Counted from the first letter of the stretch, positions 14,194 through 44,016 are shown. The stretch is DNA of 64,000 bases from IMGVR_UViG_3300000553_000004:150734-214733; one strand, 5' to 3'. The notes: a model not told the origin generated them from the letters alone. A program made the numbers and translations.

Positions 14194-14251
14194 GAACTGC
14201 GCTTCGGGAATTACGGGTCGCGGAACTGCCTTCCGGCTTGGTTCGCCTCAC
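14194..14251 (-). ncRNA. small RNA family A copy 1
   Basis: Minus-strand promoter 14252-14287; transcript GTGAGGCGAACCAAGCCGGAAGGCAGTTCCGC, near-identical to copies at 27031 and 35758. Confidence 0.6.
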
Positions 14252-14331
14252 AACAATAGATTATCAGGTTTTTATAAAACGTCAAGCCTTGCAGCTCTAC
14301 GCTTGACTGTAAAGGATGTCCTGATAAGATA

Positions 14332-14640
14332 ATGGGAAATGTCATGAGTCATCCTAAATACAAGCTAGAACTTAACACGGATTCATTTGAACCCATTATT
14401 ACAGAGTTGTTTAGGCATGGCTTTGTTTTCAGTAACGGTAGATTTAAGACTATGGCTGAAATTAAAGCCTGTCACGGTAATAATCCAGCTTGGGACTACC
14501 TAAATTTTGGCCATCATTTCGAATGTCGGATGGTTGTCTTTGGTAGCTTTTCATCTTGGATGCGTGAAACCGTGACTTTAAAGGAATTTCTAAAGATTAA
14601 GTATTACCAGCGCTTGACTGTAAAGAATAAACCAGTATGA
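14332..14640 (+). CDS. ~100-aa paralogue family member 3
   Basis: ELFRHGFVF…ECRMVV…TLKEFLK. Confidence 0.75.
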   Translation: MGNVMSHPKYKLELNTDSFEPIITELFRHGFVFSNGRFKTMAEIKACHGNNPAWDYLNFGHHFECRMVVFGSFSSWMRETVTLKEFLKIKYYQRLTVKNKPV

Positions 14641-14921
14641 TTCATCCTAGATACAAAATATGTCTTGACGCACATAATAGCTTCGACGCAATTGCGACGG
14701 AGTTGTTTAGGCATGGCTTTGTTTTCGGTCGGTTCCGATTGAAAACCATTGAAGAGATTGACAAGGAGTATAGTCTTAAATGGAGTTGGTCAGACATTAG
14801 TATTGGAATTGATTCCGAGTGTCGAATGGTCTTACATGCAAACGGTTTGAGTATGAATGAGTGTAAACTGATAACTCTTGAAGATTTTCTAAAGATTCCC
14901 TATTACCACCGCTTGACTTAA
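14637..14921 (+). CDS. ~100-aa paralogue family member 4
   Basis: ELFRHGFVF…ECRMVL…TLEDFLK. Confidence 0.75.
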   Translation: MIHPRYKICLDAHNSFDAIATELFRHGFVFGRFRLKTIEEIDKEYSLKWSWSDISIGIDSECRMVLHANGLSMNECKLITLEDFLKIPYYHRLT

Positions 14922-14954
14922 TCCCTTCTTTTGGTATCTTATTCAGACTTATAT

Positions 14955-15236
14955 ATGAGAATCGTTTACATCATCAAGACGCTCAAGCGGGCAGAGTTTA
15001 TCCGAGTTTTTAATAAACTGGCTCGTAAGGGTTACTGTTATGATGCGGATTGGCGCCTCCGCAAAGCCAGTTTGATTATTAAGGCTCGTAATGGACATCC
15101 GTTCCTTTTGTTGTTAAATGCCGACCCTGACTGTAAAATGGTGGTTTGTAACGGAAATCACCAGCGTTTTTCAAGTGACACCAAGGTCTTTACTCTCACG
15201 GTTGAAGACTATCTAAAACTTAAATTGTATGAATAA
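14955..15236 (+). CDS. ~100-aa paralogue family member 5
   Basis: LARKGYCY…DCKMVV…TVEDYLK. Confidence 0.7.
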   Translation: MRIVYIIKTLKRAEFIRVFNKLARKGYCYDADWRLRKASLIIKARNGHPFLLLLNADPDCKMVVCNGNHQRFSSDTKVFTLTVEDYLKLKLYE

Positions 15237-15525
15237 TTTGATAAAACCATACAAAATTGAGTGTACTGACTCTGACCAAGTGAAAGAACGTTTACTCTTT
15301 TTGATAAGTAAGGGTATGGTGTTTACCACTTACCGTCACCGAACTTGGGAAGTCATCTCTACTAAGTGTGGTGACCCGTGGCGGCGGTGGTGTTAGATTG
15401 AAGCTTGCCATGAAAATGATTGTTTGAAGGTTTTGAACACACGTCGATACCGGTTAGATAATGAGACTAAACACACTAAGATTGAGTTTGAAGATTTTGT
15501 GGCTCATGTCTTACCGTTGTTGTAA
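15229..15525 (+). pseudogene. paralogue family member 6 with single in-frame TAG (15394-15396)
   Basis: Manual translation MNNLIKPYKIECT…LISKGMVF…WC*IEACHENDCLKVLN…IEFEDFV; aligns end to end with 15863. Confidence 0.75.
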
Positions 15526-15562
15526 CGCTTGACTTTTTGTAACCTTTGTATAAATTGGAACC

Positions 15563-15856: not shown

Positions 15857-15862
15857 ACTATT

Positions 15863-16153: not shown

Positions 16154-16191
16154 GGGCTTGACTCTTTCGGAGAGTGTGTTAAGATTTTGGT

Positions 16192-16745
16192 GTTGATACG
16201 GTTTGTTTAGGTTGAACCGAGAAAAATAAACTGGTGGAGTCAGAAGCATAAGGTTGACAGAGTGGAACCAGAAACTCTGTTGGAGCGAGTGTAGATTATT
16301 AGGTCCCAATCGGGTTGGGTGAACAAAAACCCTTCAAACCGACAGGAACGGCGGCCTTTCCAGTCACGATAGGATTGTCTAAGGCCGCCGTCTTCAATTG
16401 ACCGAAGGTGAGTCAGCTCAAAATGACGATAACTTAGGATGGAATAGGTTCACAAAAATCCCCCCAATGAGGGTAGGAGTGCGAGCCTGTTTCATGCGTT
16501 GTTCACTTTATCGATAAAGTGATATGAGTTCTCGTAGTATCGACCACCCGCTTTGACGCTTCGTATCAATAGATTAACAGAGTTATTATAATCGTCAAGC
16601 CTTGGAAACTGTGAGGTAATGTCGAAGATAATGGGAAGAACAATCGGTAATGAGATTGACTTGAAACCCAAGGAACTTGGTCAGTCTGATTAGACCGATA
16701 CAACGATGGTAAATCCAGTTGTAAACGTCACTGTCAACCAATGGT
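16192..16745 (+). ncRNA. candidate large structured ncRNA
   Basis: Own promoter (16156-16185), no credible ORF, many helices incl. 11-bp acggcggcctt/aaggccgccgt. Confidence 0.5.
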
Positions 16746-17185
16746 ATACGAATTCTCATGGGTAAACGGTGATAGTCATCTTGAAGTTAACCACGGGGTT
16801 AATCCCCTTGGCTTTCAAAATTGCCATGGCCTTTGGTAAGGTCAACTTAGACACATTAAACAGATTGTCACATTCTGACTCCCGTTGGTTGTTGTAGAAG
16901 AAATATCCCTTACTGAGATTGGTTCCTTCAACCACGGTTATAAATTTGTAGATTGTGTCACTCACTATGATTGAATACTATCAAGATTCTCTATTATGTC
17001 AAGCGTAGTAATTTTCCATCCTCTGACAATCTTATTGTATTTAATTGCCCAATGAATATTAGATGGGTGGATATGATTGTAAATTTTTATAAAATCTTTT
17101 CTAATTCCTATAAACGTTAAGAAATAGGCGACATCGGTTTTATATCGGCGCTTGACAATTTTTAAATCTTCTGTAAATTGACAAT

Positions 17186-18325: not shown

Positions 18326-19078
18326 TTAATGATGTTTTGGTTGTGGTAAAGTCAAAAGTAACCATTCTTTTTTCTTTCCAGTATGTTTTCTTATTCCCCT
18401 AACTAACAATCTTATACCAAAATAAGATAAATGTGGATTTTTAATACTAAAATGAAAACTTGTTCCTTCAAATTTCTCTTTGGTCAACCGATTATAGAAG
18501 ACGTGAACGGTTTTGTCTATAAATCGTTCTCTCATTTCACCCATAAGTTTTTTATTGGTTAAACTTATTTTTCTTTTGGTGTCTTCCGATACCACTTTCC
18601 CTTTAAGTTTATCTGATATTTTCTTTCTAATTTCAGTAGTGAAAACTTGTCGTTCGGCAAGAAAATTTTGGTTGTAACATTTATTCTGTTCCGTCTTGGC
18701 AATGTCAAGATATTTTTGTTCTACCAAGATTAGTTTGTCTATTGGAACTTTTTCAACCACTTGAAATATAAAGTTTTCTTCTCCATACTTGTTCCAAGAT
18801 GACTGTAAATGTGGATTGGTATGTCGGCTCTCTGTCAACATCGTTTGATGTTGTCTCCTTCTATTCCAAAAGTAGTTGGTTGACCCAACATAATATTTCC
18901 CATTAACCTTGTTTATTATCTTGTATATCCCTGACACTTTCTTTCTTTTTGTAATATCGTTGAAGGCTTTCCACTCGCATTCTGTCTTTGTTTTTTTCGT
19001 AAAATCTCTTTCCTCGTTCCCGATTTTGTTCTCTAATCTGTTCAACGGTGAGTCTGTTATTTCGTTTTGGCATATCAT
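18326..19078 (-). CDS. GIY-YIG homing endonuclease
   Basis: SGIYKIINKVNGKYYVGS…HxNxxLQ…WNKYG; NUMOD3-like repeats; start re-called at MICQ. Confidence 0.88.
   Translation of the reverse strand: MICQNEITDSPLNRLENKIGNEERDFTKKTKTECEWKAFNDITKRKKVSGIYKIINKVNGKYYVGSTNYFWNRRRQHQTMLTESRHTNPHLQSSWNKYGEENFIFQVVEKVPIDKLILVEQKYLDIAKTEQNKCYNQNFLAERQVFTTEIRKKISDKLKGKVVSEDTKRKISLTNKKLMGEMRERFIDKTVHVFYNRLTKEKFEGTSFHFSIKNPHLSYFGIRLLVRGIRKHTGKKKEWLLLTLPQPKHH
18903..19073 (-). CDS. small basic endonuclease-associated protein (overlapping, alternative frame)
   Basis: MPKRNNRLTVEQIREQNRERGKRFYEKNKDRMRVESLQRYYKKKESVRDIQDNKQG; homologues at 40496, 55456, 59407. Confidence 0.65.
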   Translation of the reverse strand: MPKRNNRLTVEQIREQNRERGKRFYEKNKDRMRVESLQRYYKKKESVRDIQDNKQG

Positions 19079-19246
19079 AATGTTCCTTTCAGATAATAAG
19101 TATGTTGTTGAACATCTAAACGTTAAGAAATCTTTGGAATTCATTTTTATATTGACGCTTGACTTCTTAAAACAATGGTATAGAATTTTGTCATAGTTAA
19201 AAACAACAACTACAACAAACAAACAAACAAAAACAAATAACAAACT

Positions 19247-19789
19247 ATGAAAAACAACAAACAAAACAAGTCGAATCGTAAAAGCATGAAGGGTCGTTGG
19301 GGGAAAGTCGGAGCCCCGCCCAAGGCCACCAAGTTCCCCCGTGGAGCGTTCACGATGGAATCCCTGTTCAACATGAACCAAAATCAGTGTGAGCTGTCCC
19401 TCCGCACCAAGGTGGATATCGGAGTGGAATCCGGCGCCCTCATCGCCCTCAAAGCCCGTAAACAAAAGGGTGGCGCCGTTGGTCGGCCGAAGGCGATTTT
19501 CATCCTGAAGGAAAATTTCGACGCCTCGAAACACGAACTGGCCCCGCCGAAGTCGACGAAGACCAAGGTTGTCAAGCCCCAGACCGTGGCTGTCGTTGAA
19601 GTCGCCCAGCCGACTGTGGCTCCCGTCGCCCCCGAGGCTCTGGCGCCGGTTGTCGAAACGATTGTCGAAGCGGTTGTCAATCAACCCGTTCCGGTGAATG
19701 AAGTGATTTCTACCGAACCGGCCGCCGCGCCCGCTGTGGTTCTCGCCCCCGTCACGGCCGAGACTCTCGTTGAAATGTTGGTGAGTTAA
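19247..19789 (+). CDS. putative winged-helix protein with A/V/P/E-rich tail
   Basis: FPRGAFT…GRPKAIF; C-rich codon usage; terminator at ~19811-19841. Confidence 0.65.
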   Translation: MKNNKQNKSNRKSMKGRWGKVGAPPKATKFPRGAFTMESLFNMNQNQCELSLRTKVDIGVESGALIALKARKQKGGAVGRPKAIFILKENFDASKHELAPPKSTKTKVVKPQTVAVVEVAQPTVAPVAPEALAPVVETIVEAVVNQPVPVNEVISTEPAAAPAVVLAPVTAETLVEMLVS

Positions 19790-19885
19790 TCCGACTCTGT
19801 TGTGACACAAGGCCCGCAGTTTAACGACTGTGGGTCTTTTTCTTGCGACGCTTGACAATTCTTAAATGTTTGGTAATCTACGTAT

Positions 19886-19947
19886 GGGTGGTTAGCTCAT
19901 TGGCAGAGCCCTTTGTATGATGGGTTCGATTCCCATACCATCCACCA
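19886..19947 (+). ncRNA. tRNA-like RNA lacking anticodon arm (G3-U70, A73, CCA)
   Basis: GGGTGGT/ACCATCC acceptor, GCTC/GAGC D arm, 10-nt linker, ATGGG-TTCGATT-CCCAT T arm, ACCA; own promoter. Confidence 0.75.
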
Positions 19948-22909: not shown

Positions 22910-22916
22910 ATTTTAA

Positions 22917-23015
22917 TGGCCTTTAGCTCAATGGCAGAGCAGAGCACTCACGCGGGCAGTTACGCCTGCATCGTTAATGCTTTGGTTGACAGTTCGAGTC
23001 TGTCAAGGCCAACCA
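22917..23015 (+). tRNA. tRNA (probably CAU, Ile2/Met) with 24-nt insertion in anticodon loop
   Basis: TGGCCTT/AAGGCCA acceptor, canonical D and T arms, 31-nt anticodon loop CTCA[24 nt]TAA. Confidence 0.75.
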
Positions 23016-23622
23016 TTTTATTATTAGGATAATGTAATTCCATGTGACAGTTATGACATAATAATTGACATTTATTAACTTCAATTTGTAATTTATTGAA
23101 GGAATATCCCGACATTTTTCTTAAATCCAATCCACTTTCTTTTTCATTTGGATTTTTGTGATGAAACGTTAATGCTGAATAATTTCTGTTGTATCCACAA
23201 TTACTACATTTACCACCCAATTGTTTAATAAAAAATAATTTTCGTTCAATCCCACGATTTTTATTTTTAGTATAATTATTTTTTTCATTTTGAAAATTAA
23301 ATTGACTTTTACTAACTTTATATGTTCCTTCACTCATCGCAATAGTTTTTAAGTTATACTTTTTTAACCAATATCTTATGTTTGTTTGAGAAGATGACAA
23401 CATTTTGGCTATTTGATATGTTGATTTGTTTTGATTTATTAACTCTTTTAATTTATCAAGTGGAATTTCAACGTGGTCATAAGGAGAATTTATTGTTTTA
23501 ATTCCAAGTTTTTTCATATATCGTTTTGTCGTAGTCACCGGCATATTCAATTCTTTGGCAATTTTATAGTATCCATATCCTTTTTTAGATAGTTCTTTAT
23601 ATTTTTCTATTAGATGCTCCAT
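22960..23622 (-). CDS. HTH + HNH homing endonuclease
   Basis: Two HTH-like repeats; CSNCGY…FHH…CQLLCHNCH. Confidence 0.85.
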   Translation of the reverse strand: MEHLIEKYKELSKKGYGYYKIAKELNMPVTTTKRYMKKLGIKTINSPYDHVEIPLDKLKELINQNKSTYQIAKMLSSSQTNIRYWLKKYNLKTIAMSEGTYKVSKSQFNFQNEKNNYTKNKNRGIERKLFFIKQLGGKCSNCGYNRNYSALTFHHKNPNEKESGLDLRKMSGYSFNKLQIEVNKCQLLCHNCHMELHYPNNKMVGLDRLELSTKALTMQA

Positions 23623-26974: not shown

Positions 26975-27031
26975 ATTAACGATAAAGTGATTTGGGGTGG
27001 CGGAACTGCCTTCCGGCTTTGTTCGCCTCAC
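26975..27031 (-). ncRNA. small RNA family A copy 2
   Basis: Promoter 27032-27067; GTGAGGCGAACAAAGCCGGAAGGCAGTTCCGC. Confidence 0.6.
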
Positions 27032-28023
27032 ATAGATAATTTATCAAAAGTATTGCAGAAGTCAAGCCTCACCCGATTTTCACAGGTGAGGCTTGGTGAG
27101 AGTGTGGATTAAATTTTGTTCTGTTTTCGACAGACATACAGGGCCTGAAAGACGCCCATCATTTTAGGAAATGTCGTAATAAGATAATCACGAGCGATTT
27201 CAGGATTTTTCAATCCATAAACAAATCGTGGCAAGCCACGGGAATCATCACGGGCTGCCAATTCTAGTTGGCGTTCGGCTGTTGTGAGAGGACGACGGAA
27301 AAGGCCGACCTTGCGAGCGATGGCCGGAAACCCCTTCGAGTATTCACGCCACATCGGGTCAGGCCGTTCATTATCCGAACAGATTTTGTTCAACCGGCTG
27401 CCGACATAATTGACATCGTAATTCATGTTCAACACTGAACTCATAGTCGAACAGAGAATAACGACGGTGGGCGCCGTCTGGCAAAATGTCATCACGGCCA
27501 ACGTGGTATCTCGCCATGGCAATGAATAAGGAACTTTTTGTCTCGAACCAGTTAATTCACGACTGTTACGAAGTATGTTCACTGTTTGGTTGTCTTCCAT
27601 AAAAGATAATGGAAGATTGGTGTTATTTTGACACATATTATTTTTTGTTTGTTGTTTGTTTGTTACGAAATCAATTTATCAAAGTTTGTAGAAATGTCAA
27701 GCGACGTCAGGGAACTGAAATAGTTCCTGTAAGGTGGGAGTGAACCCAAGTTCGGTGGTGATTTTATTCTTCTTCACCATGAGACGTGTGGCGATTTGGC
27801 GAGCCATATAGGCCGGACGTTCACCATCTTGGTAAAGGTTTTCAGGTGAGAGTTGTCCTTCAATGTCCCGTAGTTCATCAAAGAGTTGTTCTTTTCGTGT
27901 AGCAGTCATGTCTGTAAATTATCAAAACATTGTAGTAAGTCAAGCGGTGGTTAACCGAGGCTTGACAATATTAATATGTTTGGTAACTTATCAATATGAA
28001 ATACATCACTGTTTCACCAACAC

Positions 28024-28755: not shown

Positions 28756-28809
28756 CGCAAAAGGGAAGCTGGAGTGTGATGACTCCGGCTTTCTTCTTTT
28801 TCATTTACA

Positions 28810-28874
28810 TTAACGTTAAAGGAATTAACGCACTCGCCGATACCCTACTCTTGGTTTTTGACAACCTCATCAAC
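28810..28874 (-). ncRNA. small RNA family C copy 1
   Basis: Promoter 28875-28910; GATGAGGTT…AACCAAGAGTAGGGTATCGGCG…TGCGTT shared with 39186. Confidence 0.5.
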
Positions 28875-28904
28875 AAAGATAGGTTAACAAATTGTTTAGG
28901 GAAG

Positions 28905-29285
28905 TCAAGCGGCGAGAGCTTTCTTGACTTCGGAGATGGTTGCCAAAGGCTTGATGATTTTTGGCTTGCCTCTGGGATTTAATGAGAACCCTTTACTTCG
29001 TTCAAGAACTTCTTTACGAGACAGACACAAAGTTTCTAACTTTGACCGTCCGTGATTACAAGCATAACACGCAATTACTTTTCTCTGTTCTCCATGACGT
29101 TTTTTCTTCCATCGGGAAAGATTGTAACGTGAAATTACGTGCTCTATTGTTGCCGAATTTGGTGGTAAAGTTTGACCAGATGGAATATTTTTAATGTCAG
29201 TTAAAATTGTAAGGCACCCACAATAAAAACAATTTGGATTGTTTGCGTGAAGTTTAAGTTTTAACGTCCGATTACTCATCGTCAT
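28905..29285 (-). CDS. HNH endonuclease
   Basis: CFYCG…ATIEHV…ACYACNH. Confidence 0.85.
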   Translation of the reverse strand: MTMSNRTLKLKLHANNPNCFYCGCLTILTDIKNIPSGQTLPPNSATIEHVISRYNLSRWKKKRHGEQRKVIACYACNHGRSKLETLCLSRKEVLERSKGFSLNPRGKPKIIKPLATISEVKKALAA

Positions 29286-30866: not shown

Positions 30867-31004
30867 TTAACGAACACAGGCGTAGTAGATGACGTAGAAC
30901 CAACCGAAAATCCCATGAAGGATTGCCCAGCCGATTGATTTATTGATGGTGAACGAGATGGCAATTGCCATCGCCGAACCGAATCCAATTACTGATTTAA
31001 TCAT
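30867..31004 (-). CDS. 45-aa membrane protein
   Basis: MIKSVIGFGSAMAIAISFTINKSIGWAILHGIFGWFYVIYYACVR; after promoter at 31063; below ORF-track cutoff. Confidence 0.7.
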   Translation of the reverse strand: MIKSVIGFGSAMAIAISFTINKSIGWAILHGIFGWFYVIYYACVR

Positions 31005-33056
31005 ATTTTTGTTTTGTTGTTTGTTTTATTAACGACTTCAATTTATCACAGTAATCTATTTAGTCAAGCGGTCAGTCCCACCACATACGAGTCACATTGT
31101 CGAAGGGATATTTGTGTTCAATGTAATCACAATAATCGGCCCCACACACGTTTTTAACCTTGCCGGTGACATACATACAGACACTTAACTCACGAGCGAG
31201 GATGATTTTACAATCATCGGGGAGGGATTCCAACATGGACGGTGTGAATTCGTTGTATTCAGGACAAGCCTCTTCCATGATTCGGATTGCGGTCACTTTG
31301 TCCACGGGTGAGACAGCCCGAAAATCCAATTGACGAGTCTCTTCGTTGTAGGCAATCAGAACCGAACGGCGAACGGTTTCATTGATGAATTTTTGGTTAA
31401 TAATCATGACTTAAATTTATCAAATGTTTATTGTAAGTCAAGCCTCATACATCTACGCTTGACATTATGGTAATGTTTGATATTTTAACCACATGAATTT
31501 GAAGTCCACTATTACCGATGTTTGTTCCGCCATCCTCACTCAACATCTTGGGTCCATTGAAAACGTCGTGATTGATTCGGCCTGTAAGACTGTTATTACC
31601 GAGTGGAATACTCATCACACCGAACAGATTGACACTCGCCACGAACTCGCCGAGTGGAGTCGGACGATGGATGGTATCAGAACCGAACAGCTCGGATGTG
31701 GTAATTGTGAACATTGTTCATGTGGCGAATCCCATTAATTTTATGTCAGTACAATACATTGAAAACGAAATCGTTCATCTCAATGGTGAACTCGTAACCG
31801 TAGTCCGTCAATTCACTCAGACTCAGAGTGATTCATGGAACGGTCAACTATCCGTAATCAAGGTCGGTGAGAATCGGTATAAGTATCTCATCACTGCGAT
31901 GGATGGCAAGTCGACGTTATTTTCAATGTGTGATGTTCTCCGAGTCGAACCGTCTCTATCAGTCAGTGTGGGAACTTCCCAAATAATCCGACTGAAAGGT
32001 TCAATGTAATGTGTATTATTGTTTTATTCGCTCTATTAGGTTTACCGATAGGCGCAGTCGGTTTGTTCTGTCTCATCTACTTCTTCTTTTTCATGAGTCG
32101 GTGACGCTTGACATTAATTAAATGTTTGGTATTTTAATCACATGAATAACAATTTACTTTTACAGGCTCAGAAATGGTTGGCTACTATCGGCATCAAATC
32201 CGAAGCATGTCAGACCTTTCTCAAAGTCAGTCGCAAAGATGTCGACGACAGTGGCCTTTTCGAAACCGATTCATTTCTTCGTGAATTGAAACTTGGTATC
32301 GGTAGTAATAAACTCTATCTCGGATTGGATGATGTGGCGAACTATCACATCAAAGCATTCTAACCCCACACGGGGAGTGGGTACCCCCAGCGCATTACCT
32401 TTTTGGGACCCCCAGCGCTGTTTCACCCGCTACCCGCGCCTGAATACTGCGCTGGTGACGCTTGACAATTAAAACAAACAATGTAGTATTTCAATATGAA
32501 TGAATACATCGTCAATCTCACTTGGTCTGTAACCGGCTCGGTCAAGGTCAAGGCAAACTCACCCGAAGAAGCTGCCGAACTAGCTAAGGGCCCTACGGTT
32601 TCCTTGCCCGAATCCAATTATTATCTCGAAGATTCAATCACCTGTAACCCTGATGCCGACGTCCGGTTAATATCGTAATACTATGAAACAACTACTGACA
32701 TGGTTACGTAAACGTACACCGTCGTTTATTTGCGCAGTAATAGGTCACGGGCATCTTTCAACAGTCGAACCGTATCAAACGATATGGACATACAAAAATT
32801 ATAAGGGACTGACCGTAGAGGATTTAACGAAGACCGATAACGTATCCGAAGTATCAGTCCGCGGAAAGTTAAAATGTAAACGTTGTGGACAGATTTCCAT
32901 CGGTAACGTTAAATATAAAAACTATTGTTAGTTTAACGTTAAAGGACACCAATACACAATAAACCATATGGCGCCTAATAGGCGGTCATACATGCGCAGA
33001 ATTGTGGCGTACTTGAAGTATATTACCATTTTTTATCGCAACGTCAAGCGCCAGGA

Positions 33057-33132
33057 GTTAACGTTAAAGGAATTAACGCAGGCCTTGGTCCCACATTCTC
33101 GGCGCCTTTCGGTCGGCCTCATCATCTCTCAC
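33057..33132 (-). ncRNA. small RNA family C copy 2
   Basis: Promoter 33133-33168; GTGAGAGATGATGAGGCCGA…CGCCG…TGCGTT. Confidence 0.5.
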
Positions 33133-33345
33133 ATGAATAGTTTAACAAATAAGACCGAGAAGTCAAGCGGTGGGAAAACGTGTGAGTTTTATTGGCAAAG
33201 TTTGGATACGTCCAAACACAATCCAATGGTTCACTCACATGAATAGTTTAACAAATAAGACCGAGAAGTCAAGCGGTGGGAAAACGTGTGAGTTTTATTG
33301 GCAAAGTTTGGATACGTCCAAACACAATCCAATGGTTCACTCACA
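33128..33345. repeat. exact tandem duplication, 106-bp unit (promoter + hairpin RNA)
   Basis: ctcaca at 33128, 33234, 33340; identical units. Confidence 0.92.
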
Positions 33346-34404
33346 ACCCGTAAGAGTTAGCCAGTCTGAATCCGTTAACAGAGGTCGAGCTGAGGAAGTG
33401 GTTATCTAGAAACCTTAAACTGTCATTTCGTTAAACATAATACGGAAACCGAACTGCTTTTGTGTCCCTTACATTGTCTTTCCTTTACACCATCAATCTA
33501 TCATACTATCCAAAAGAGTCAAGCGTGGTCTGACACCGCTTGACAATAGTTAAAACAATGATAGTATTCAATTATGAACGGAAAGATTAAATTCGACGAA
33601 CTGAGTGACTTGGCAGAGTTTCTCAAACACTTCACCGGTAGCTCGGCTATCTTTGAAGTCCGCCAAGACATGACGACGAAACGGTGGATACTTGAATTTA
33701 CCGGAGGCTTTTAATTATGAAAATTACAACAGTTGTCGAGAATAATCCGGCGAACGTATGAAAACCGGCCGCAAAGTCGCCGTCATTACATATATCCAAG
33801 TCATGATGTTCAAGGCTTGACATTAGTTAAACATTTGGTAAACTTTTTATATGAAGAAATTCTGTATGGTTGCCATTTCCAACCTGTCATTCACAAGGGG
33901 AAAGCGGTGGGCTGAAAAGTATGTGGAGTTGCGAATGGAATTTCATCGTAAACACGGCCACGGGTTGATTCTGTCAACGTGGCATGGCGTCGAATTTTTC
34001 GACAACGTGTTAAAGGCCCTCAATGGCGATATGTGTAAGGAACCCAAAGGGGAATACCGAAATAATTTCCTCAAACTGATTGAGATTGGTTCGAGGGAGG
34101 CTTGACATTAGTTAAACATTTGATACAATTTCTATATGACAAAAACCACCTTAGTCTTTATTGGGACGAACATCAGCCCGAAAGTCGGCGACATTCTGAC
34201 TGACTTCCGAGGCGATACCGAAATTTTCTGCTCGTCGAATCCGCCCTACGAGCCCGAGGACAGTCTCAACCGCGGCGCCAAGGTATACACCCGCAAGGCC
34301 GGAAAGACAAGTCAAAATCACAGTTATCCTTCCGTGTATGGGTTGGAATTTGTCCTGACGCCCGAGGCTTGACAATCCAAGACAAATGTGGTATGATTCA
34401 GCCA

Positions 34405-35223: not shown

Positions 35224-35757
35224 CACCGCTTGACAATTCTCAAACATTTGATAAAATACTTTTATGATTAATTTCATTATCCCAAAAACCTCCATGTGTG
35301 TCGTCATTTCCTATCGGGACGGCAACAAAACCGAAACTCTCATTCCTACTCCGTGTAACAACGCGGATTTGCGGAATACAATGTTGATGAAACATCGAGT
35401 GGGCTTCTCCGAGATTCGGGGAATCAAGTCCGTCGAGGCCGGCGAGATGTTTCGCGGCCGGTGACACGCTTGACAATTACCGAATGTTTGGTAACTTGTT
35501 TAGGTAAGAAGAATTTAAAAATCATGGTTGTTGGTTGGTTCGGGGCTTTTCTTTTTTCTCCCCGATGGTCCCTATATTTTGGGAAACCAACCAACAATCG
35601 AATCTGGTGGCTGTTTGGGACTATCCGTGATATAATCGTGGGTCGCACGGGACCTCGTTACCAAAACTCTAATAGCTACCGTTACACGGAGTCAAGCCTC
35701 ATTCCGAGTATATGGAGTGGGGCTTGACTCCTGCAAATCTTTTGTTAAACTATTCAT

Positions 35758-35815
35758 GTGAGGCGAATCAAGCCGGAAGGGAGTTACGCGACCCGTAATT
35801 CCTTTATCGATAAAG
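35758..35815 (+). ncRNA. small RNA family A copy 3
   Basis: Promoter 35722-35757; GTGAGGCGAATCAAGCCGGAAGGGAGTTACGC. Confidence 0.6.
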
Positions 35816-36506
35816 ATGGGACGCTTGACAATAGTTAAATGTTTGGTATATTGTATTTACATATGACACCTGAACAGACCAAACTAATCTCCGACTTGGC
35901 CGCCGACTTGAAACCAATGGTTAAAGATATTGAGGCCGGCATACCTACCACCCAAAACAATTACGGCCGTTATGGGTCGCTCATCAGTCAATTGTCAAAG
36001 GGTGACAAACGAGTCGGCGCCATCATCGCTCTGGCGCTGATTGAAGCCGGTGCGAATCGTGTTGGTGTTCAAAACGCACTGAAACTCTTTGTGTAAGGCT
36101 TGACATTTCTTTAACATTTGATACACTTTCTATATGAAAAAACTATTCAAACAAAAACCGCGCAACCAAGTTGGGTATCGTTACAGTAACAATTACATTG
36201 GAACTGTCACTGTCACGCCGGAAAATCTGAAACGACTCTCGGAGTTTCGTCAAGCCGTCCGTGAAATCGGTCGCTCGACTTCGATTCGTGGCCGGTCAGC
36301 CAATCGTCGGGCTCTTGCCGAACGCCATGGTTTGATATATAACATGGTCTTGTCAGACGTTCCCGCCAAGTTCGCAACGTCGCTCGATGTTTACTGGCGT
36401 TAATAATTTGTCAAGCGTTGTGTCGCAGTAAACGTCACCATTATTCAGTGTGATGATTGAAAGATGCAACGCTTGACAATAGTTAAAACAATGGTATTCT
36501 TTGGTT

Positions 36507-36941: not shown

Positions 36942-37014
36942 GGCTTGACAAGTCCCCGTGTATAACAGCGGGGATTTTGTCCTGCGGTAAACTTTCGGGC
37001 TAAAAATCAATGCA

Positions 37015-37069
37015 GGTGTAGTATCGACGTTCCGCTTGTTCAGCTCTCTTTTGACTCCGTATGTCTCAC
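37015..37069 (-). ncRNA. small RNA family B copy
   Basis: Promoter 37070-37105; GTGAG…AAGCGGAACGTCGATACTAC. Confidence 0.5.
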
Positions 37070-38736
37070 ATGGATACTATAACAAACTATCCCGCCGAGT
37101 CAAGCGTCGTAGAGTGAGGCTTGACATTCCTTTAACATTTGATACACTTTTTATATGATTAAAGGAATTACAATTTTAAGCCGCGATGGAAAACATAAAG
37201 GTCACTATACAGGCGGCGTCCGGCCCTGTCAAATGGAAGGTTGTCGTGGGAGTCGAATGGCTATCAGATGGGACGATGGAAAACTAACATATCCTTGTAG
37301 CACTTTGACTAAAGCCATTTCGTCGACCACGCATAAAATAATGTGACGCTTGACATTCCTTTAACATTTGATAATCTATCTATATGATTTTAACAGCTAA
37401 CGAGGAAACTCGGTTTAATTTATTGGAGGAAAAGTTTTCCAAGGGACAATGCACCGAGCCTGAAATTATCGAACTGCAAGAACTGCTCGACCGTTATTAC
37501 AACAATTGTCACGCTTGACATTAGTCAAACATTTGATACACTTTCTTTATGACAATTTCACAACTCGCCAAATTGAATAAGAAACACGGCGGCCATTTTT
37601 TCGACCATGACAACATGAAGGTTGCCGGTGATACACAGAAAAGTTATCGGATTGAATCCGACGAACTGAATAAGACCGTGATTCTCACTCGCAAACGGGA
37701 TAACCATCAATGGGAATTTTCCGCCAAGACCGGCCGCGTTACTCACGCTTGACATTTCACCAAACAACCCTATAATCATTTTACATATGCCACCTATCAA
37801 AAAGATGACTTTTAATGAGTGTATGGACGGTTATATCGCCGCCCTCGACACTATCACACAACAACAGATTGACGCCCTCGCCTATATCTTCGGCGCAAGT
37901 GGGTGTGGTTGGACGAAGGAAAAGGCTATCGCCGAATTGGGATTCGAGAAACACGACGCAGGTGATGAACTCGACGACAACGCTTGACATTCCTTTAACA
38001 ATTGATACACTTTCTATATGACAAAATCATACACACACGAACAAGTCACTTATGGGGCCAAGGGCCGCCGGTGGGAATTTACCGCCCCCAATTATCAATT
38101 TGCGACGCCGACGATGCCGGGAGGGGTCATTACGGCCCACAAGGTTGCCCGAGTCATCAACGGCTCGCATAAACGGTGTGACGGGATGGACAATCTGGCG
38201 CGGGGGAAGATGTCCACCATTTTCCACAAGGCCGCAACGGCGGCCAGCCGGAGGATTCGGTAAAAACAAACAAGGGGCGAACGGTGGGCGCAGTTCCACT
38301 TCGCAAGATGAAAACATTAAACGTTCGCCCCTCTTTCTTCACCGCTTGACAATTTTTAAATGGTTGGTAATATTCAGATATGAAAACAACCAAGGAAATC
38401 AAAAACTTTTTAAAGGAAATGGGCCTCACTGTCAGAGGTAACACGGGTACCGGAAAGTCTAAATGGCAATCTTTCCATGTTCCGTCTGACATCATTCCCA
38501 TTAGCCAGCTTCAAGTAATGAAATTCAGTCTGCCGGAGTTTCCGGTGGAGTTTCGCAAACTCTGTATCCGAACGGTTTATCCTGATTCTGAAACTCTTTA
38601 CTCGCAGGACACGGCCGGAAATGTCGGAAAGTATAGCATCGCCATGTTGCCCCACCAATGGGAACACGTCATGGCGGTCTGGCCGCTGAAGTTCATCGCT
38701 TGACATTTCTCAAAACAACTGTAAACTGTCTTTGTC

Positions 38737-39105: not shown

Positions 39106-39185
39106 GGTTCGGTCAATCGGCATCAAGCCTCCCCGAGAAATTGGGCGAGGCTTGACTGCTGCGGTGAATATGTTAAACTTTCCTT

Positions 39186-39249
39186 GTGAGAGACGATGTG
39201 GCTGAAATACGCCGGAGAGTAGGGTAACGGCGGCTGCGTTCGTTTTTTT
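39186..39249 (+). ncRNA. small RNA family C copy 3
   Basis: Promoter 39150-39185; GTGAGAGACGATGTGGC…GCCGGAGAGTAGGGTAACGGCG; T-run after. Confidence 0.55.
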
Positions 39250-39337
39250 GAGTGTATAGGAATGAGACACGCTTGACAATTCATTTAAGTATTGTATTCT
39301 GTATTTGTAAACGGTAAACATCAAAACAAATAACAAT

Positions 39338-39796: not shown

Positions 39797-39802
39797 TTCG
39801 GT

Positions 39803-40501
39803 TCATATTGTAACCAGCCCCGATGAAAGACTCTGGGTCTGGTTTTTTTTCTTTTTATGGGCAAGACTCATTTTAAGTCTTGTTTCTGCTGAACGTTTCT
39901 TTCCCCAATGTGGACTATTAGGACCTGTGTTTACATTTCTTAAATGTTCTTTTTCATTTTCTGTTAGTTTTCTATGTGGTGAAGAATTAGACATTTTTAA
40001 TTTGACTTCATCGGAATATTTTTTGCCTATTTTGGCAATAGACATTTTCTCTCTTGCATAATCACTAAAAAATTGTTCGGTTGATTCAAATTTTAGATTG
40101 TAACATTTGTCTTGTTCATTTCTGGCAATGTCAAGATATTTTTGTTCTACTAATATTCTTTTATTAGGTTCGGTAATTTCTACTATTAGAAATTCAAAAT
40201 TATCCTTACCATATTTATTCCACGCACGCTGTAAGTAATCATTATAGTGTTTATTTTCAATTAAACAATTCTTATGTTCTCTCCATCGTCGTTGAATACT
40301 ATTAGCACTTCCAACATAATACTTGCCATTAGTCTTGTTTACTATCTTGTAAATTCCCGATACGTTTCTTTTCGTGGTAGTCGGCAAGTTTTTCTTTTCT
40401 AATTCTGTCTTTGTGTCGTTCGTAAAATCGTTTGGCACGTTCATTGTTTCGTTTTCTTTGTTCGTCAAGTGTAAGTTTGTCGTTTCGTTTTGGCATATCA
40501 T
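39803..40501 (-). CDS. GIY-YIG homing endonuclease
   Basis: SGIYKIVNKTNGKYYVGS; NUMOD3-like repeats. Confidence 0.88.
   Translation of the reverse strand: MICQNETTNLHLTNKENETMNVPNDFTNDTKTELEKKNLPTTTKRNVSGIYKIVNKTNGKYYVGSANSIQRRWREHKNCLIENKHYNDYLQRAWNKYGKDNFEFLIVEITEPNKRILVEQKYLDIARNEQDKCYNLKFESTEQFFSDYAREKMSIAKIGKKYSDEVKLKMSNSSPHRKLTENEKEHLRNVNTGPNSPHWGKKRSAETRLKMSLAHKKKKNQTQSLSSGLVTI
40329..40496 (-). CDS. small basic endonuclease-associated protein (overlapping)
   Basis: MPKRNDKLTLDEQRKRNNERAKRFYERHKDRIRKEKLADYHEKKRIGNLQDSKQD. Confidence 0.65.
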   Translation of the reverse strand: MPKRNDKLTLDEQRKRNNERAKRFYERHKDRIRKEKLADYHEKKRIGNLQDSKQD

Positions 40502-40559
40502 AAGTTATCCTTTCATTTAATAAGTATAATATGAAATTTGATAACGATAGAAAATTTAC

Positions 40560-40626
40560 AATTATCGTTAAAGGAATCAACGCACTCGTAGTATCGACCT
40601 CCCGCTTTTACGCTTCGTTATCTCAC
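40560..40626 (-). ncRNA. small RNA family B copy
   Basis: Promoter 40627-40662; GTGAGATAACGAAGCGTAAAAGCGGGAGGTCGATACTACGAG, near-identical to 16564 copy. Confidence 0.55.
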
Positions 40627-41335
40627 ACCAATAGTTTAACAAATAACCCAGATAAGTCAAGCGTCGGAGAGTGAGGCTTGACAATTTCTATTAGTAATAT
40701 AAACTACCTATATGAAAAAGTTCACGCACGTCGGTCATGTGGTTGGAACGGGAGACTTATATCCCAGCTACAACACCAAGCTCCGCGAAACTAAAACTCT
40801 GTGGGTGACGCCCAAGGGCATCAAGTTCCGCAAGTCTGATGGGTTCAAGCCGAATGATGAATGGCCGAAAACTCACTTGGACTTGGCCACGGTTATGTCG
40901 CAGGTCACCATCTGATATTGATTGAGGCTTGACGTTTCTTTAACATTTGATACACTTTCTATATGAAAAAAACAACTGACCAACTTATCGCCGAATACAA
41001 ATCCGAATTCATCCGCACCAACGGAAAAGAAATTTTCTGCTGCTGTTACACCAACGGCTGGTTCCGTGTCGGTAACTCGGATAAAGTTCGCCGTGTCAAA
41101 TTCGAGGAAATGATTGCCACTTTACAGAGTCGCCCGACCGTCAGCGACCGCACCGAAATGGTGAATGGTGTTCCGACCGTCATCAAGGCTAGCCAACACG
41201 TCGTCCGGTCCTATCTGGCGCCGCACTCCGATATTGTCGAAGAGCGTGACACTCCGCACTGCTGCTCCCCTTCTAACGAAACGTATTGGTCCATGTGAGG
41301 CTTGACAATACTCAAACAATCTATATCATTTAAAC

Positions 41336-41794
41336 ATGAGAACAAAATACTTCAAAAATATACGGGCATTTGACGCCATCAAACGGCTCGCTAACGATAG
41401 TCTCACCGCCCCATACGAGCAGACCGATTCGTGGAAGCCGTCCGCATACTCAATCTCGGAAGTATACAACCGCAACGACTTCCAACAAATCACTCGCCAA
41501 GAGGCGCGGAAGTTACGCCCGACGGCCTTCCGCACTCCGTTTTCTAAGGCTTGATTTCTTAAACAATTGTGGTAATCTAACCATATGAGAACAAAATATT
41601 TTACGAAACAATCGTCCTTCATCCGTGTGTGGCGAATCAGGAACAATTTCGTCGCATACTTTTCACGCGGACGGGGTTATGTGTGGTGTCGGTCGGCGTG
41701 TGATAACCTCGAAGACTGTATCGCCGGCAGCCTGACTCCCGTCACCCGCGACCAAGCTCGCAAGATGGAACCCAAGGCTTTCCGCAAGGCTTGA
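41336..41794 (+). other. two paralogous ~70-aa ORFs (41336-41554, 41585-41794; third member 43302-43520)
   Basis: MRTKYF…(I/V)TRxxARKxxPxAFR; each with own promoter. Confidence 0.7.
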
Positions 41795-43969
41795 CATTCC
41801 TTTAACATTTGATACACTTTCTATATGAAAAAGAAACTATCCAAAGCTCTTCAGGCCGCAATCAAACGTTATCTTGACAATCGTGACAATCGTGACAGTC
41901 AATCGGCAACGTTCGTCTGGGACAAGCCGGCTGACCAAAAAGCAATCTCTGAAATTGCTTTCACTGAAAAGTCAATGGTTCGTGTCGAACAATCATCTGG
42001 TCGTTGGTGGTTCACCGTGAAACGTGGCGCCCAACGTTGGACGTTCTACGCCCATGAAGACAATTACACGCAGACACTCACCGGCACGCAGGCAACGTCC
42101 TGTAGCCCGCTGACAACACTGTTCGGCAGGGCTTGATTTAGTTAAAACTTTCGGTAAACTGGCTTTATGAGAATGTTATCATCTACGCCGCCCCCGGAAG
42201 AGGAAACTCAAGCAGACCGTGACCGGCTGACTCGTCAAGGCCCGCCACTAGGCAAGCATCGTATCAATCTCGGGCCGCTCGGTTATGTGACCAAAGGCCA
42301 CTGGGGACGCAAGCCTGATTGGGCATTCGCAAATTGTGTCTTGGTGCTGGAGTTGGTGCTGGGTTCGGCTATGTGGGTTCGGTATCCTCGCCATGATATC
42401 GTCGCTTGACTTGTGGTAAACTTTCTATAAATTAAGTGTATGAGTTGCCCTTGTCCATGTTGTAAGACAGATTCCGACAATTTCGGTAAGCCACCGGTAA
42501 ACTGTCCAAAATGTAATAAACCAATGTGGAAGTGTTCCACAAGTTATGGCGCCGTTTGGGCGTTGCCGCCTATGTTAAAACATTTACGGGCTGGTAGTCT
42601 TCATGCTATTGTTTATGAATGTTACGAATGTAATGTGATTATACCAACAAATGTGAATCGTCACGATTATCATAAACGTCGTGACCCTGCTGATGGTGAA
42701 CTAAAACGTATGCTCACGGTAACATTATACCATGAGCCTGATTTTCAGACTTTTACCAAGTTTGGGCCATTTGCTAAGTCCGCTTGACTTTCTACAAACT
42801 TTCTATAAATTAAGTGTATGACGAAGACCGCACAAGAAGCTGAAGCACTCTCCAAGAAGCTACGGGTTGCTTTCGAGAAAGTCCAGAACAAGGAACACTG
42901 GAAGAATCCGATTGATGCCGTCATTCACAAGTCTGAAATGGATATCACCGGCGATGCCATTCAATTCTTCACCGGAACACAAGCCTTTTTCAGCTCCAAC
43001 AAACTGACTTTGGCCGAATGTGAGGCCGGCATGGTTCGTGTCACCGCTGCCGGTTACTACGCCGGCCCATGTAATTGATTTATGTTAATCACCAAACAAT
43101 TTGACGAAATCATCGTCGAACGAACACACTGCCCAAGTTGTCGGGCGCCAAGAGGCCATAACTGTTGCTCGGCCTTCGGTAACTTTGTCTCTCCACACAA
43201 AGACCGTGTGAAGGATTTTCAAAAGAGGTTCGATGTCAAGTTCACGGTGCTACCAAAGCTGAAGGCTTGATTTGTCAAAACAATCGTGGTAATCTAACAA
43301 CATGAAACGAGCCAAATATTACAAGATAGCCGGACTGTTCGCAGTGTTGCTTTGTCCTGCTGGTGGTGACAAGGGCTTCACTGTCCATGCTAACGGATTG
43401 CTTGGCGAACATTACAATCTGTCAACCGACTTCCCGAATGGTGGTATCAGCCGGATTAGTCGTGACGAAGCCGAACGGATTGCCCCTCGCTCAGCTCTCC
43501 GTCAATACAAGATAACATGACACTCGCCGACTTACAACATTTCAAATATGCTGGTGGTTATTTCAGAGACGCCAGAGTGCCAAAGGGCAAGACAGCTCCC
43601 GTGCTTCATGGTAGTGAAATCATTGAGGTTATACAGAAGCACCTGAATCCTCCAGTCGAACGACCTGGCAATGACCAGGCTTGTGTGGATGCTCAATGCC
43701 CTTGATACGCTTGACTTGAGCAAAGTTCTTGGTATCTTATCTATATGAAATTGATTCTCACCAAACACGCCGACCATGTTGAGGTTGAAGTGATGGACGG
43801 TAGCCTTCGCCTTCATTGCTACACTTTCAACAACATGAAACTTGCCGAGGCCTTTTGCACCGGCTTCCACTGTGCCAAGACTGTAATCAACGGCATGGTT
43901 CAATCTCTGCCACTCGGTTACGAGAAGCGGAAGGCTTGACCGGTGGGATTGGTGTGATATGATGTGGGT

Positions 43970-44016
43970 GTGAGGTTCCGATGGGTATGTTCCCTTACCG
44001 AAAGGTAGAGCCTCAA
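43970..44016 (+). ncRNA. small three-way-junction RNA
   Basis: Promoter 43934-43969; GAGGTTC/GAGCCTC enclosing GGG/CCC and TACC-GAAA-GGTA. Confidence 0.45.

Follow-up and report, generated by a model that had tools for sequence, protein, structure and literature searches.

New small-RNA gene cassettes among the leaderless genes of an uncultivated giant phage

The protein genes of an uncultivated giant phage almost all lack a 5' leader, with the ATG placed directly behind the promoter, yet at nine promoters this position begins GTGAG instead. We asked what these promoters drive. They belong to about a dozen promoter-driven genes for small untranslated RNAs of a previously undescribed superfamily and of unknown function, which also occur in over a hundred related phage fragments from lakes, bogs and soils. 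The stretch analyzed here (the window) is 64,000 nucleotides of a 214.7-kb metagenomic phage (IMGVR_UViG_3300000553_000004:150734-214733). It contains 82 near-identical sigma-70-type promoters of the form (G/C)GCTTGAC-N17-TAnnnT, 54 of them with ATG exactly 6 nt after the -10 box (leaderless mRNAs); the seventh base after the -10 is A in 54 and G in 22.

The initial annotation had noticed GTGAG at nine promoters, and this observation was confirmed: every site was found at the given coordinate and strand, 6 nt after the -10 hexamer. GTGAG is the second commonest initial 5-mer in the window (9 occurrences, after ATGAA with 25), and across the clade it starts 39 of 469 unique non-ATG cassettes, against about 0.1 expected per 100 promoters for any one 5-mer. 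Four further ORF-less starts named in the annotation, 16564(-), 28874(-), 33013(-) and 33488(-), are also real, and its claim of at least three sequence families was borne out by three families that we call F1, F2 and F3. The annotated lengths of 45–80 nt are inferred from promoter-to-palindrome distances (44–71 nt) and not from mapped ends. The annotated description of these RNAs as structured holds only in part on thermodynamic grounds: z-scores are -2 or below for 5 of 13 RNAs, and the F3 RNAs and some F1 RNAs fold no better than shuffled sequence. In the following list, bit scores refer to the covariance model R1.

14207..14287 (-): F1a cassette; promoter 14258-14287, RNA start 14251 (GUGAGGCGAAC...), about 45 nt; no adjacent palindrome, the nearest being at 14029-14038.
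16506..16600 (-): F3b cassette; promoter 16571-16600, RNA 16564-16520, starting ACGAAGCG without GTGAG; 14-bp palindrome 16506-16519.
26975..27067 (-): F1b cassette; promoter 27038-27067, RNA 27031-26988, palindrome 26976-26985; the next promoter (26954) drives the GP88-family gene.
28809..28910 (-): F2c cassette; promoter 28881-28910, RNA 28874-28822, starting GUUGAUGAGG; palindrome 28810-28819; 54.5 bits.
33345..33524 (-): first unit of an RNA-gene cluster; promoter 33495-33524 and an ORF-less transcript of about 144 nt from 33488, which folds no better than shuffles (z = +0.8) and of which no homologue was analyzed.
33172..33344 (-): long-hairpin RNA GUGAGU...ACUCAC in two copies, 33344-33278 without a promoter directly upstream and 33238-33172 with promoter 33245-33274 (z = -3.8).
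33057..33168 (-): F2a cassette; promoter 33139-33168, RNA 33132-33070, palindrome 33058-33067; 65.3 bits.
32932..33049 (-): cassette X13; promoter 33020-33049, RNA 33013-32943, palindrome 32933-32942.
35722..35814 (+): F1c cassette; promoter 35722-35751, RNA 35758-35801, palindrome 35804-35813, followed by the next promoter at 35824.
36997..37105 (-): F3c cassette (long form); promoter 37076-37105, back-to-back with the 37120(+) promoter; RNA from 37069 with a U-rich end (UGAUUUUUAG).
39150..39250 (+): F2b cassette; promoter 39150-39179, RNA from 39186 to about 39250, ending in a hairpin plus U7; 55.1 bits, z = -3.1.
40561..40662 (-): F3a cassette; promoter 40633-40662, back-to-back with 40677(+); RNA 40626-40574, palindrome 40562-40571; it lies 125 nt upstream of the GIY-YIG gene 39803-40501, which has no promoter of its own.
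43934..44291 (+): promoter 43934-43963 and a GUGAGG transcript from 43970; the first ~46 nt form a Y-shaped fold with a CCGAAAGG hairpin, followed by a G+C-rich structured region (z = -2.6 for nt 1-51; -2.0 for 322 nt).

Two of the nine GTGAG sites required correction. The start at 33238(-) is one copy of a perfect 106-bp tandem duplication (33128-33345), and a third, promoter-less copy of its hairpin lies at 33278-33344. The start at 43970(+) opens a longer structured region and also has GAGG 6 nt before an ATG; an overlapping 74-aa ORF (43981-44205) was not called as a gene in public assemblies.

Because GTG occupies the position of ATG, we first considered whether these cassettes are leaderless genes for GTG-initiated micropeptides. 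F1 frames are open for 14–39 codons, and a real-looking 69-aa ORF starts with GTGAGT at 16965(-). However, the GTG frames run 2–39 aa and are not conserved. The start at 40626 reads GTG-AGA-TAA (2 aa), F3 frames are mostly 2–9 aa, F2 frames range from 2 to 38 aa, and frames run through the palindrome and the next promoter. Only 18 of 59 F2 and 9 of 18 F3 RNAs start with GTG or TTG, and many homologues lack a start codon at +1; F2 homologues start AUAGUAA or AUAAUAA, which contain stop codons. F1 homologues differ by 3- and 4-nt indels, and stems co-vary irrespective of codon position. An open reading frame from +1 conserved in length and frame among homologues was not found, and we regard the micropeptide reading as very unlikely.

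The same comparisons show that GTGAG is not what unites the cassettes. F2 and F3 homologues in sister phages begin ATAGTAA, ATAATAA, GTTGA, GTGGA, AGATG or ACGAA; only F1 and a set of F1/F3 chimeras always start with GUGAG, where the last G opens the first hairpin, P1. "GT" is the usual start of G-initiated transcripts here, and "GAG" belongs to F1 or to a lineage-specific leader.

We next sought to determine how widely the RNAs are distributed and whether selection acts on the RNA itself. The 45 nt of F1a are identical (45/45) in the sister phage L003/L034, although the neighbouring protein is only 67% identical between the two phages and the flanks no longer align. A metagenome scan recovered at least 120 loci, and a search for F2 gave 86 hits (71 distinct) at E≤1e-3 in 71 loci. 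The clade alignment was collected with a promoter-plus-palindrome pattern, so the frequency of that architecture is biased upward. The family cores are 15–60 times over-represented in clade DNA, and the order F2-then-X13 recurs in L095, L115, L124, L135, L165, L173 and L179. The cassette pattern and the F2 and F3 cores had no true match in 185,579 species genomes.

The related cassettes form one modular superfamily. Each RNA has a short 5' (G)UGA; a hairpin P1, whose stem sequence is free to vary as long as it pairs and which is often capped by a GNRA or UNCG tetraloop; an invariant purine-rich core specific to each family; a variable tail; and an end signal, either the DNA palindrome CTTTAWCGWTAA or a U-rich tract. 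Most of the RNAs end at the palindrome, which is found almost only after RNA cassettes. The core of F2 is AGAGUAGGG(G/U)A(C/U/A)C, partly paired with a downstream CCCUGC or CCCUA; that of F3 is GGAAGGU(C/A)GAUACUAC; and that of F1 is GGAAGGCAGUUCCGCC.

A lack of structural covariation among homologues had been set out in advance as a result that would count against the RNA-gene reading. Instead, covariation was observed. Thirty-six distinct P1 sequences of F2 all fold as the same hairpin, with six stem pair combinations (GGAG/CUCC, GGGA/UCCC, GGGG/CCCC, GGCG/CGCC, GGUG/CACC and GGUU/AACC) and inner CC-GNRA-GG or CU-GAAA-AG. The covariation score is 0.092 against 0.041 for shuffled alignments, with 0 of 500 shuffles as high and three pairs changed on both sides. 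Apart from P1, helices lack two-sided compensatory changes; helix P2 of F2 shows none and is 63% paired. F1 and the chimeras are 100% paired, with one G-C to C-G flip and GAAA/UUCG/UACG/GCAA loop swaps. Thus, P1 behaves as a structured non-coding RNA element.

We then asked whether any described family accounts for these RNAs. As the initial annotation had anticipated when it proposed an Rfam search, none does. Scanning the whole window against Rfam 15 at gathering score returned only tRNAs and a tmRNA, scanning 13–45 kb at E≤5 returned nothing on the cassettes, and short-stretch scans of F2a, F2b and 43970 at E up to 10 gave only chance-level hits. A hammerhead ribozyme (core CUGANGA ... GAAA flanking stem II, with a cleavage-site helix) was not supported: only GAUGA is kept, the two preceding bases vary (AC, UU, GU, GG), the 3' side reads AAGAG, AGAGA or GGAGA, and no Rfam hammerhead hit was obtained. 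A ToxI-like antitoxin of a type III toxin-antitoxin system, a tandem array of short direct repeats next to or mimicking a toxin locus, was not supported either, since the only tandem repeats are the 106-bp duplication and a CA-rich leader, and the family copies are dispersed.

The palindrome raises the possibility that the cassettes act in cis, as punctuation of a very promoter-dense genome. In this view it would bind a dimeric phage or host protein that blocks read-through or regulates the next promoter, and the short RNA would be a by-product or a co-transcriptional signal, such as a put-like polymerase-modifying RNA or an attenuator. The palindrome is strongly enriched in the window (9 against about 0.24 expected), 8 of the 9 sit at RNA-cassette ends, and it is too weak to act as an RNA hairpin. 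Intrinsic terminators are not enriched in the region (24 found against 19.1 expected), and a G+C-rich hairpin followed by a U-tract was seen only at 39186(+); the other cassettes end at the palindrome or at weak U-rich tails. The next GCTTGAC often starts 13–19 nt after the palindrome, which puts its center near -50 or -61 of the next start; three of the window's cassettes sit directly in front of another promoter-gene unit; and 40626(-) forms the 5' UTR of the GIY-YIG gene. However, only 38 of 134 palindromes have a promoter within 75 nt downstream. No fixed cis relationship was seen, as cassettes precede genes, face them, run into converging genes or have nothing downstream on their strand. 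Some copies replace the palindrome with a U-tract but keep the RNA, and a by-product would not keep invariant cores and a co-varying hairpin across more than 70 distinct copies. We therefore consider a cis role unlikely.

The invariant cores could equally be seeds that base-pair with host or phage transcripts, since they are conserved as sequence while the scaffold varies. The complement of the F3 core (13 nt) lies at 7995-8007 inside leaderless gene 7954-8292, and 16564(-) and 16192(+) are convergent, overlapping transcripts. Across 788 kb of clade DNA, however, only that one F3-core copy lies antisense to a gene with no promoter in front of it, about what chance predicts (0.38). No other complementary sites were seen for the F1 or F2 cores, and minus-strand matches to the E. 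coli rRNA operon are at chance level. The host transcriptome is unknown, so host targets are not excluded, but on present evidence the base-pairing reading is doubtful.

Alternatively, the RNAs could mimic protein-binding sites of host stable RNAs (5S rRNA loop E-helix IV for F2; 23S or SRP sites for F3 and F1), diverting ribosomal or assembly proteins, or rRNA-directed defence nucleases, and so favouring leaderless translation. F2 has GAUG(A/U)-hairpin-(G/A)AGAGUAGGG(G/U)AC, the same order as the 5S GAUGGUA-helix IV-GAGAGUAGGGAAC, and one 15-mer matches 14 of 15 positions. One F3 copy carries AAAGCGUAAUAGC, identical to 23S 1088-1100, and one long F3 aligns to 23S 1588-1647 with 0 of 100 shuffles scoring as high; these 23S matches are confined to single members. 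Resemblances to 5S, 23S and 16S rRNA motifs did not pass statistical tests. A profile search (nhmmer) with F2 gave E = 0.8 over 13 nt of 5S, model R1 found no 5S hit at E≤10 in the E. coli rrn operon, Rfam 5S and SSU models do not report these RNAs, and 219 unique cassette RNAs gave 7 non-tRNA BLAST hits to the rRNA operon at E<0.05, where about 11 are expected. On these tests, for which only E. coli rRNA served as the reference, mimicry is unlikely, as is its boldest form, which the data nonetheless do not exclude: that a whole clade of giant phages expressing nearly all genes as leaderless mRNAs deploys a diversified, recombining arsenal of decoy RNAs whose cores imitate such sites, disabling SD-dependent translation, ribosome assembly or RNA-directed defence enzymes so that only the phage's leaderless messages are read, with a dedicated palindrome-binding factor setting the 3' ends of the RNA genes.

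Taken together, the interpretation offered in the initial annotation, an early-expressed arsenal of RNA decoys or sponges carried as cassettes alongside protein cassettes, is partly supported. That these are non-coding RNA genes carried as promoter-bearing cassettes, in families matching none described, is well supported; our analysis establishes the promoters, the non-coding status, the superfamily relationship, the P1 covariation, the conservation across many phages and the RNA-specific palindrome. Beyond this we can only infer, and tentatively propose, that small RNAs of about 45–75 nt, each transcribed by the host sigma-70-type RNA polymerase from its own strong promoter at the +1 position used for the leaderless mRNAs, act in trans. 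The P1 scaffold would present the invariant core to a sequence-specific partner, most likely a protein of the host or of a host defence system, which would be titrated during early takeover while the leaderless genes are expressed from the same promoter class. Trans action, protein binding, timing and 3' end formation at the palindrome (perhaps through a dimeric DNA-binding roadblock) all belong to this inference, and transcript existence, ends and timing were not measured. No binding partner, target or host was identified, and no RNA-binding protein gene was recognized in the window. The neighbourhood is of host-takeover or anti-defence type (T7 Gp5.9-like, Mom, SprT-like, GIY-YIG), and the same promoter class also drives tRNAs and a tRNA-like RNA without an anticodon arm.

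Among known systems, the put RNAs of lambdoid phage HK022 are likewise short (about 60–70 nt, two hairpins), encoded immediately downstream of strong early promoters, transcribed by the host polymerase and conserved as RNA rather than protein. put acts in cis on the transcribing polymerase ahead of long operons with terminators, whereas here many cassettes have no downstream gene, intrinsic terminators are not enriched, each family has three or more copies per genome, and there is no sequence similarity or Rfam hit. Protein-titrating bacterial sRNAs (CsrB/RsmZ, 6S RNA) and phage RNA decoys (solitary CRISPR-repeat RNAs, pseudo-ToxI, extra tRNAs) are also non-coding RNAs with their own promoters, present in several copies, displaying a conserved motif on a variable scaffold and encoded among counter-defence or takeover genes. 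The phage RNAs have no repeated GGA hairpin loops, no 6S-like open-promoter mimic and no tandem antitoxin-type repeats; likeness to a host CRISPR repeat, as expected of an RNA anti-CRISPR, was not assessed, the host being unknown.

With the gamma domain of bacterial 5S rRNA (loop E, helix IV), F2 shares the order GAUG - hairpin - GAGAGUAGGG-AC and a 9–13 nt identity with E. coli 5S nt 98-110, but its 5' strand is 2 nt shorter and it has no partners for helix V or helix I; it is not a 5S gene. All seven weak Rfam hits for F2a are archaeal C/D-box sRNA families (sR32, sR45, sR47 and others), because of the RUGAUGA-like AUGAUGA near its 5' end, and many F2 tails contain NUGAU. The scores are 6.7–11.6 bits against gathering scores of 36–50, the canonical F2b gives no hit, most copies have only 0–3 nt before the box-C-like motif, too close to P1 to form a terminal stem, and there are no guide regions; the RNAs thus do not qualify as C/D-box sRNAs, which require box C RUGAUGA and box D CUGA brought together by a terminal stem, with guide sequences. 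Finally, leaderless expression with the -10 box adjacent to the ORF is described for Deinococcus-Thermus and Thermus phage phiYS40 (PMC12340547). That literature concerns mRNAs, and a parallel set of RNA genes using the same promoter register was not found in our searches; what the two share is the genomic setting, a -10 hexamer 6 nt before ATG for most genes.

The 214.7-kb IMG/VR contig 3300000553_000004, to parts of which the window is 100% identical, belongs to an uncultivated giant phage and occurs in bog-lake and peat metagenomes, and the window has no near relative among 50,697 deposited phage records. It encodes 14 tRNA or tmRNA genes, an RNA ligase, Mom, GIY-YIG endonucleases and two ADP-ribosylglycohydrolases, and public gene calls also show a T7 Gp5.9-like protein, a SprT-like protein and SIR2. 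Between 1 and 45 kb almost every gene has its own promoter, (A/G)A(C/G)GCTTGAC(A/T)-N15-TG-N-TAnnnT. There are 82 such promoters, and the base 7 nt after the -10 hexamer is A in 54 of them, followed by TG, so these are leaderless mRNAs. Other features noted in the window are:

19851-19944 (+), a tRNA-like gene with its own GCTTGAC promoter, in which the anticodon arm (18 model positions) is replaced by 6 nt while the acceptor, D and T arms and an encoded CCA are intact (Rfam tRNA 38.9 bits); neither ARAGORN nor the whole-window Rfam run detected it
22917-23012 (+), a 96-nt Rfam tRNA match (54.7 bits) that ARAGORN did not report, possibly interrupted by an insert, overlapping the 3' end of minus-strand ORF 22960-23622
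49979-50371 (+), a full-length tmRNA gene in a phage genome (Rfam 131 bits), with an unusual predicted tag ending in AVA
57068-57143 (+), a tRNA with anticodon CUA (amber-suppressor type; labelled Pyl by ARAGORN), within a cluster of phage tRNAs at 57-62.7 kb
39803-40501 (-), a GIY-YIG homing-endonuclease-type gene with no leaderless promoter, behind an RNA cassette of family F3 (F3a)
18326-19858 (-), a second GIY-YIG gene of this type, called at half this length in a public assembly
58588-59448 (-), a third GIY-YIG gene of this type
19193-19245 (+), 27632-27666 (-), 31003-31033 (-) and 39307-39337 (+), 30-50 nt leaders made almost only of A and C (AAACAAACAACAAA...), on a few genes that are not leaderless; this looks like a second, SD-free initiation mode, and the same leaders occur in the sister phages

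The initial annotation had listed nine promoters with GTGAG at the position otherwise occupied by ATG, together with four further starts without an ORF, and all thirteen proved to be where it had placed them; the observation is confirmed. Self-comparison sorted these starts into three families and four singletons:

14251 (-), 27031 (-) and 35758 (+), family F1
33132 (-), 39186 (+) and 28874 (-), family F2
40626 (-), 16564 (-) and 37069 (-), family F3
33238 (-), 33013 (-), 33488 (-) and 43970 (+), singletons

GTGAG at +1 is far above chance, occurring at 9 of 82 promoters here and in 39 of 469 unique non-ATG cassettes in the clade. Site 33238 (-) lies in a perfect 106-bp tandem duplication (33128-33345; 2.1 copies) of a promoter plus a long-hairpin RNA, which is either very recent or an assembly effect. 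Downstream of the F1 RNA that starts at 14251, positions 13443-14250 comprise about 800 nt with no convincing ORF; this stretch is AT-rich, contains two copies of the palindrome core described below (13618, 14029) and ends in a G+C-rich stretch. Further promoter-driven transcripts without an ORF at +1, which had not been listed, start at 16192 (+), 23953 (+), 24365 (+), 29500 (-) and 35504 (+). The first of these converges on the F3 RNA from 16564 (-), and related long RNAs occur in L065 and L078, two of the related loci. Back-to-back promoter pairs with a fixed geometry (GTCAAGC-N13-GCTTGAC) are found at 14286/14302, 27944/27961, 31442/31458, 33523/33539, 37104/37120 and 40661/40677. Four of the six pairs launch an RNA cassette on one side. 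Across the clade, RNA promoters have a divergent partner about as often as mRNA promoters (24% against 17%).

We next asked whether these transcripts might encode peptides. Read from the GTG, 40626 gives 2 codons, 37069 gives 9 and 39186 gives 13, and across the clade the frames run from 2 to 39 aa. Most F2 copies and half of the F3 copies do not begin with a start codon at all, and F1 homologues differ by 3- and 4-nt indels. The peptide reading was rejected on this evidence. GTG-initiated, near-leaderless translation may nevertheless exist in this phage, because at 16756-16965 (-) GTGAGT opens a plausible 69-aa ORF 9 nt after a -10 box, overlapping the next ORF by ATGA. A search against Rfam, which had been proposed in advance with the expectation of no hit, returned nothing for these RNAs at gathering score, nothing on the cassettes at E<=5, and only chance-level C/D-box hits on one copy. 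Likenesses to hammerhead and C/D-box RNAs fail on the core features of those families.

In order to identify relatives, we searched IMG/VR, which holds only two further lineages with this architecture (L003/L034/L078, and L035/L036 with their fragments), plus a more distant phage, L014. F1 is 45/45 identical in L034, although the neighbouring 144-aa protein is 67% identical and the flanks no longer align. In these lineages F2 starts AUAGUAA or AUAAUAA rather than GUGAG. Exact-pattern scans of IMG/VR for GTGAG behind the promoter, or for the F3 15-mer, returned mostly chance hits. A palindrome, TTAWCGWTAA, occurs 9 times in the window (about 0.24 expected), and eight of these copies lie at the 3' end of an RNA cassette, in the orientation CTTTAWCGWTAA. 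We used promoter-N{48,78}-palindrome as a family-independent pattern. A single metagenome scan with this pattern returned at least 120 loci, and roughly 100 of the 139 matches are RNA cassettes. The same pattern in 185,579 bacterial and archaeal species genomes gave 42 hits, none containing F2 or the F3 core. Thus, the RNAs appear confined to this phage clade; no host was identified and no host or prophage copies were found. In seven metagenome loci (L104, L138, L151, L155, L184, L187 and L198) we observed another cassette RNA family, (G/A)ACGGUUGAAUAAACUAGGAUAGGGGACCAACGGCUACC, which shares the UAGGGGACC core with F2 and the same palindrome end, but occurs on contigs with few of the GCTTGAC promoters.

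With many copies in hand, the families merge into one modular superfamily. F2 reads (leader)-GAUG(A/U)-P1-(A/G)(A/G)GA(G/A)UAGGG(G/U)A(C/U/A)CGG...(C)UGC(G/A)-tail, where P1 is a hairpin. F1 reads GUGA-P1-GGAAGGCAGUUCCGCC-ACCCC, and F3 consists of a hairpin or a GCG...GCG segment, then GGAAGGU(C/A)GAUACUAC-GAGAG. Chimeras carry the F1 5' domain and the F3 3' domain, and the 3' module UGCGUUGAUUC is shared by F2 and F3.

A lack of structural covariation among homologues had been named beforehand as grounds for dismissing these RNAs, and covariation was found. Thirty-six distinct F2 P1 sequences all fold into the same hairpin, with six different Watson-Crick combinations at stem positions 3-4 and inner CC-GNRA-GG or CU-GAAA-AG extensions. 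On the model-fitted alignment of 71 distinct copies, the covariation score is 0.092 against 0.041 for shuffles (0/500 as high), three pairs change on both sides, and pairing falls from 79% to 28-55% when partners are slid; it is important to note that this alignment leans toward the model. In F1 and the chimeras the helix is 100% paired, with one G-C to C-G flip, and its cap swaps among GAAA, UUCG, UACG and GCAA. P1 is real. A second F2 helix (GUAGGG with CCCUGC, or, in another register, with CCCUA) is plausible, but in our reading it has only one-sided changes. K-turn and terminal-stem models for F2, and a long-range GAUG/CGUU helix, were not consistent across copies. Thermodynamic stability alone is unremarkable for F3 and part of F1. 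A covariance model of F2 (R1) finds exactly the three F2 copies in the window, at 54-65 bits with the next hit at 10.8 bits, and 86 copies in 71 clade loci.

G-initiated transcripts in this clade nearly always begin with GT (GTGAG, GTTAT, GTTGG, GTTGA, GTGAT, GTCAG), and the first two bases therefore reflect the promoter's initiating preference, (A/G)T. In F1 and the chimeras, GUGA precedes P1 and the fifth base opens the helix. In the window's F2 and F3 copies, GUGAGA is a lineage-specific leader, replaced elsewhere by GUCAGA, GUAAGA, AGUGA or nothing. GTGAG is not the feature that unites these RNAs.

The palindrome is too weak to be an RNA hairpin. It occurs in all four W/W combinations, marks RNA cassettes rather than protein cassettes, and can be replaced by a U-rich tail. 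It looks like a site for a dimeric DNA-binding protein that defines the end of RNA genes. Only 28% of copies are followed closely by a promoter, which argues against it being mainly an operator for the next gene.

The RNAs combine a variable but pairing-constrained scaffold with an invariant, largely unpaired core, they have several paralogues per genome and no fixed relation to a downstream gene, and their cassettes use the same strong promoters as presumptive takeover genes. All this points to trans-acting RNAs recognized sequence-specifically. We favor a protein partner (a decoy or sponge) over base pairing, because no complementary sites recur and because the cores stay fixed in phages that have otherwise diverged. 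The search for antisense targets gave a single site, a 13-nt perfect complement of the F3 core (TCGTAGTATCGAC) at 7995-8007 (+), 42 nt into leaderless gene 7954-8292; it is the only such site in 788 kb of clade DNA and is probably chance. Whereas the RNA genes and their membership of a new superfamily rest on the sequence comparisons themselves, trans action and binding to a protein are inferences from this arrangement, and the Pfam annotations of public gene calls across the window show no RNA-binding family that might supply a partner. The interpretation in the initial annotation, an arsenal of RNA decoys or sponges that start with GTGAG, is partly supported, in that these are RNA genes of a new superfamily, but the decoy role is unproven. 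We are highly confident that these are non-coding RNA genes, while the full explanation, including trans-acting protein binding, is offered tentatively.

We tested whether the cores imitate host stable RNAs. F2 shares GAUG-hairpin-GAGAGUAGGG-AC with the 5S loop E-helix IV domain, and single F3 members match 23S 1088-1100 or align to 23S 1588-1647. Short identities thus exist for 5S and 23S, and also for SRP mimicry. However, apart from single members, the nhmmer, covariance-model, Smith-Waterman and BLAST statistics, which for the rRNAs were taken against the E. coli rrn operon, are at chance level, and we therefore report this only as a lead. Mimicry of the 16S 3' end (helix 45/anti-SD) by F2 was not borne out, since the putative helix shows no compensatory change and there is no significant alignment to E. 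coli 16S. The possibility that F3 acts as an SD sponge (GGGAGGU) is not general; other copies read GGGUGGU or GGAAGGU, and F2 often lacks GGAG.

If the RNAs titrate host factors, they would be a new class of takeover or counter-defence tool and a source of compact protein-binding RNA modules. Even if they act in cis, the palindrome-plus-RNA unit would be a new way of punctuating transcription. The finding also gives three ready-made covariance-model seeds for annotating metagenomic phages. Few phage-encoded small RNAs are known, and most were found by RNA-seq in model phages. The superfamily described here is defined by sequence, with clear covariation, several paralogues per genome, chimeric members and its own end-of-gene signal, and it is conserved across more than 100 environmental phage fragments. 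It sits in a genome whose expression logic, one promoter per gene and leaderless translation, is itself unusual, an architecture documented for Deinococcus-Thermus and phage phiYS40 (PMC12340547).
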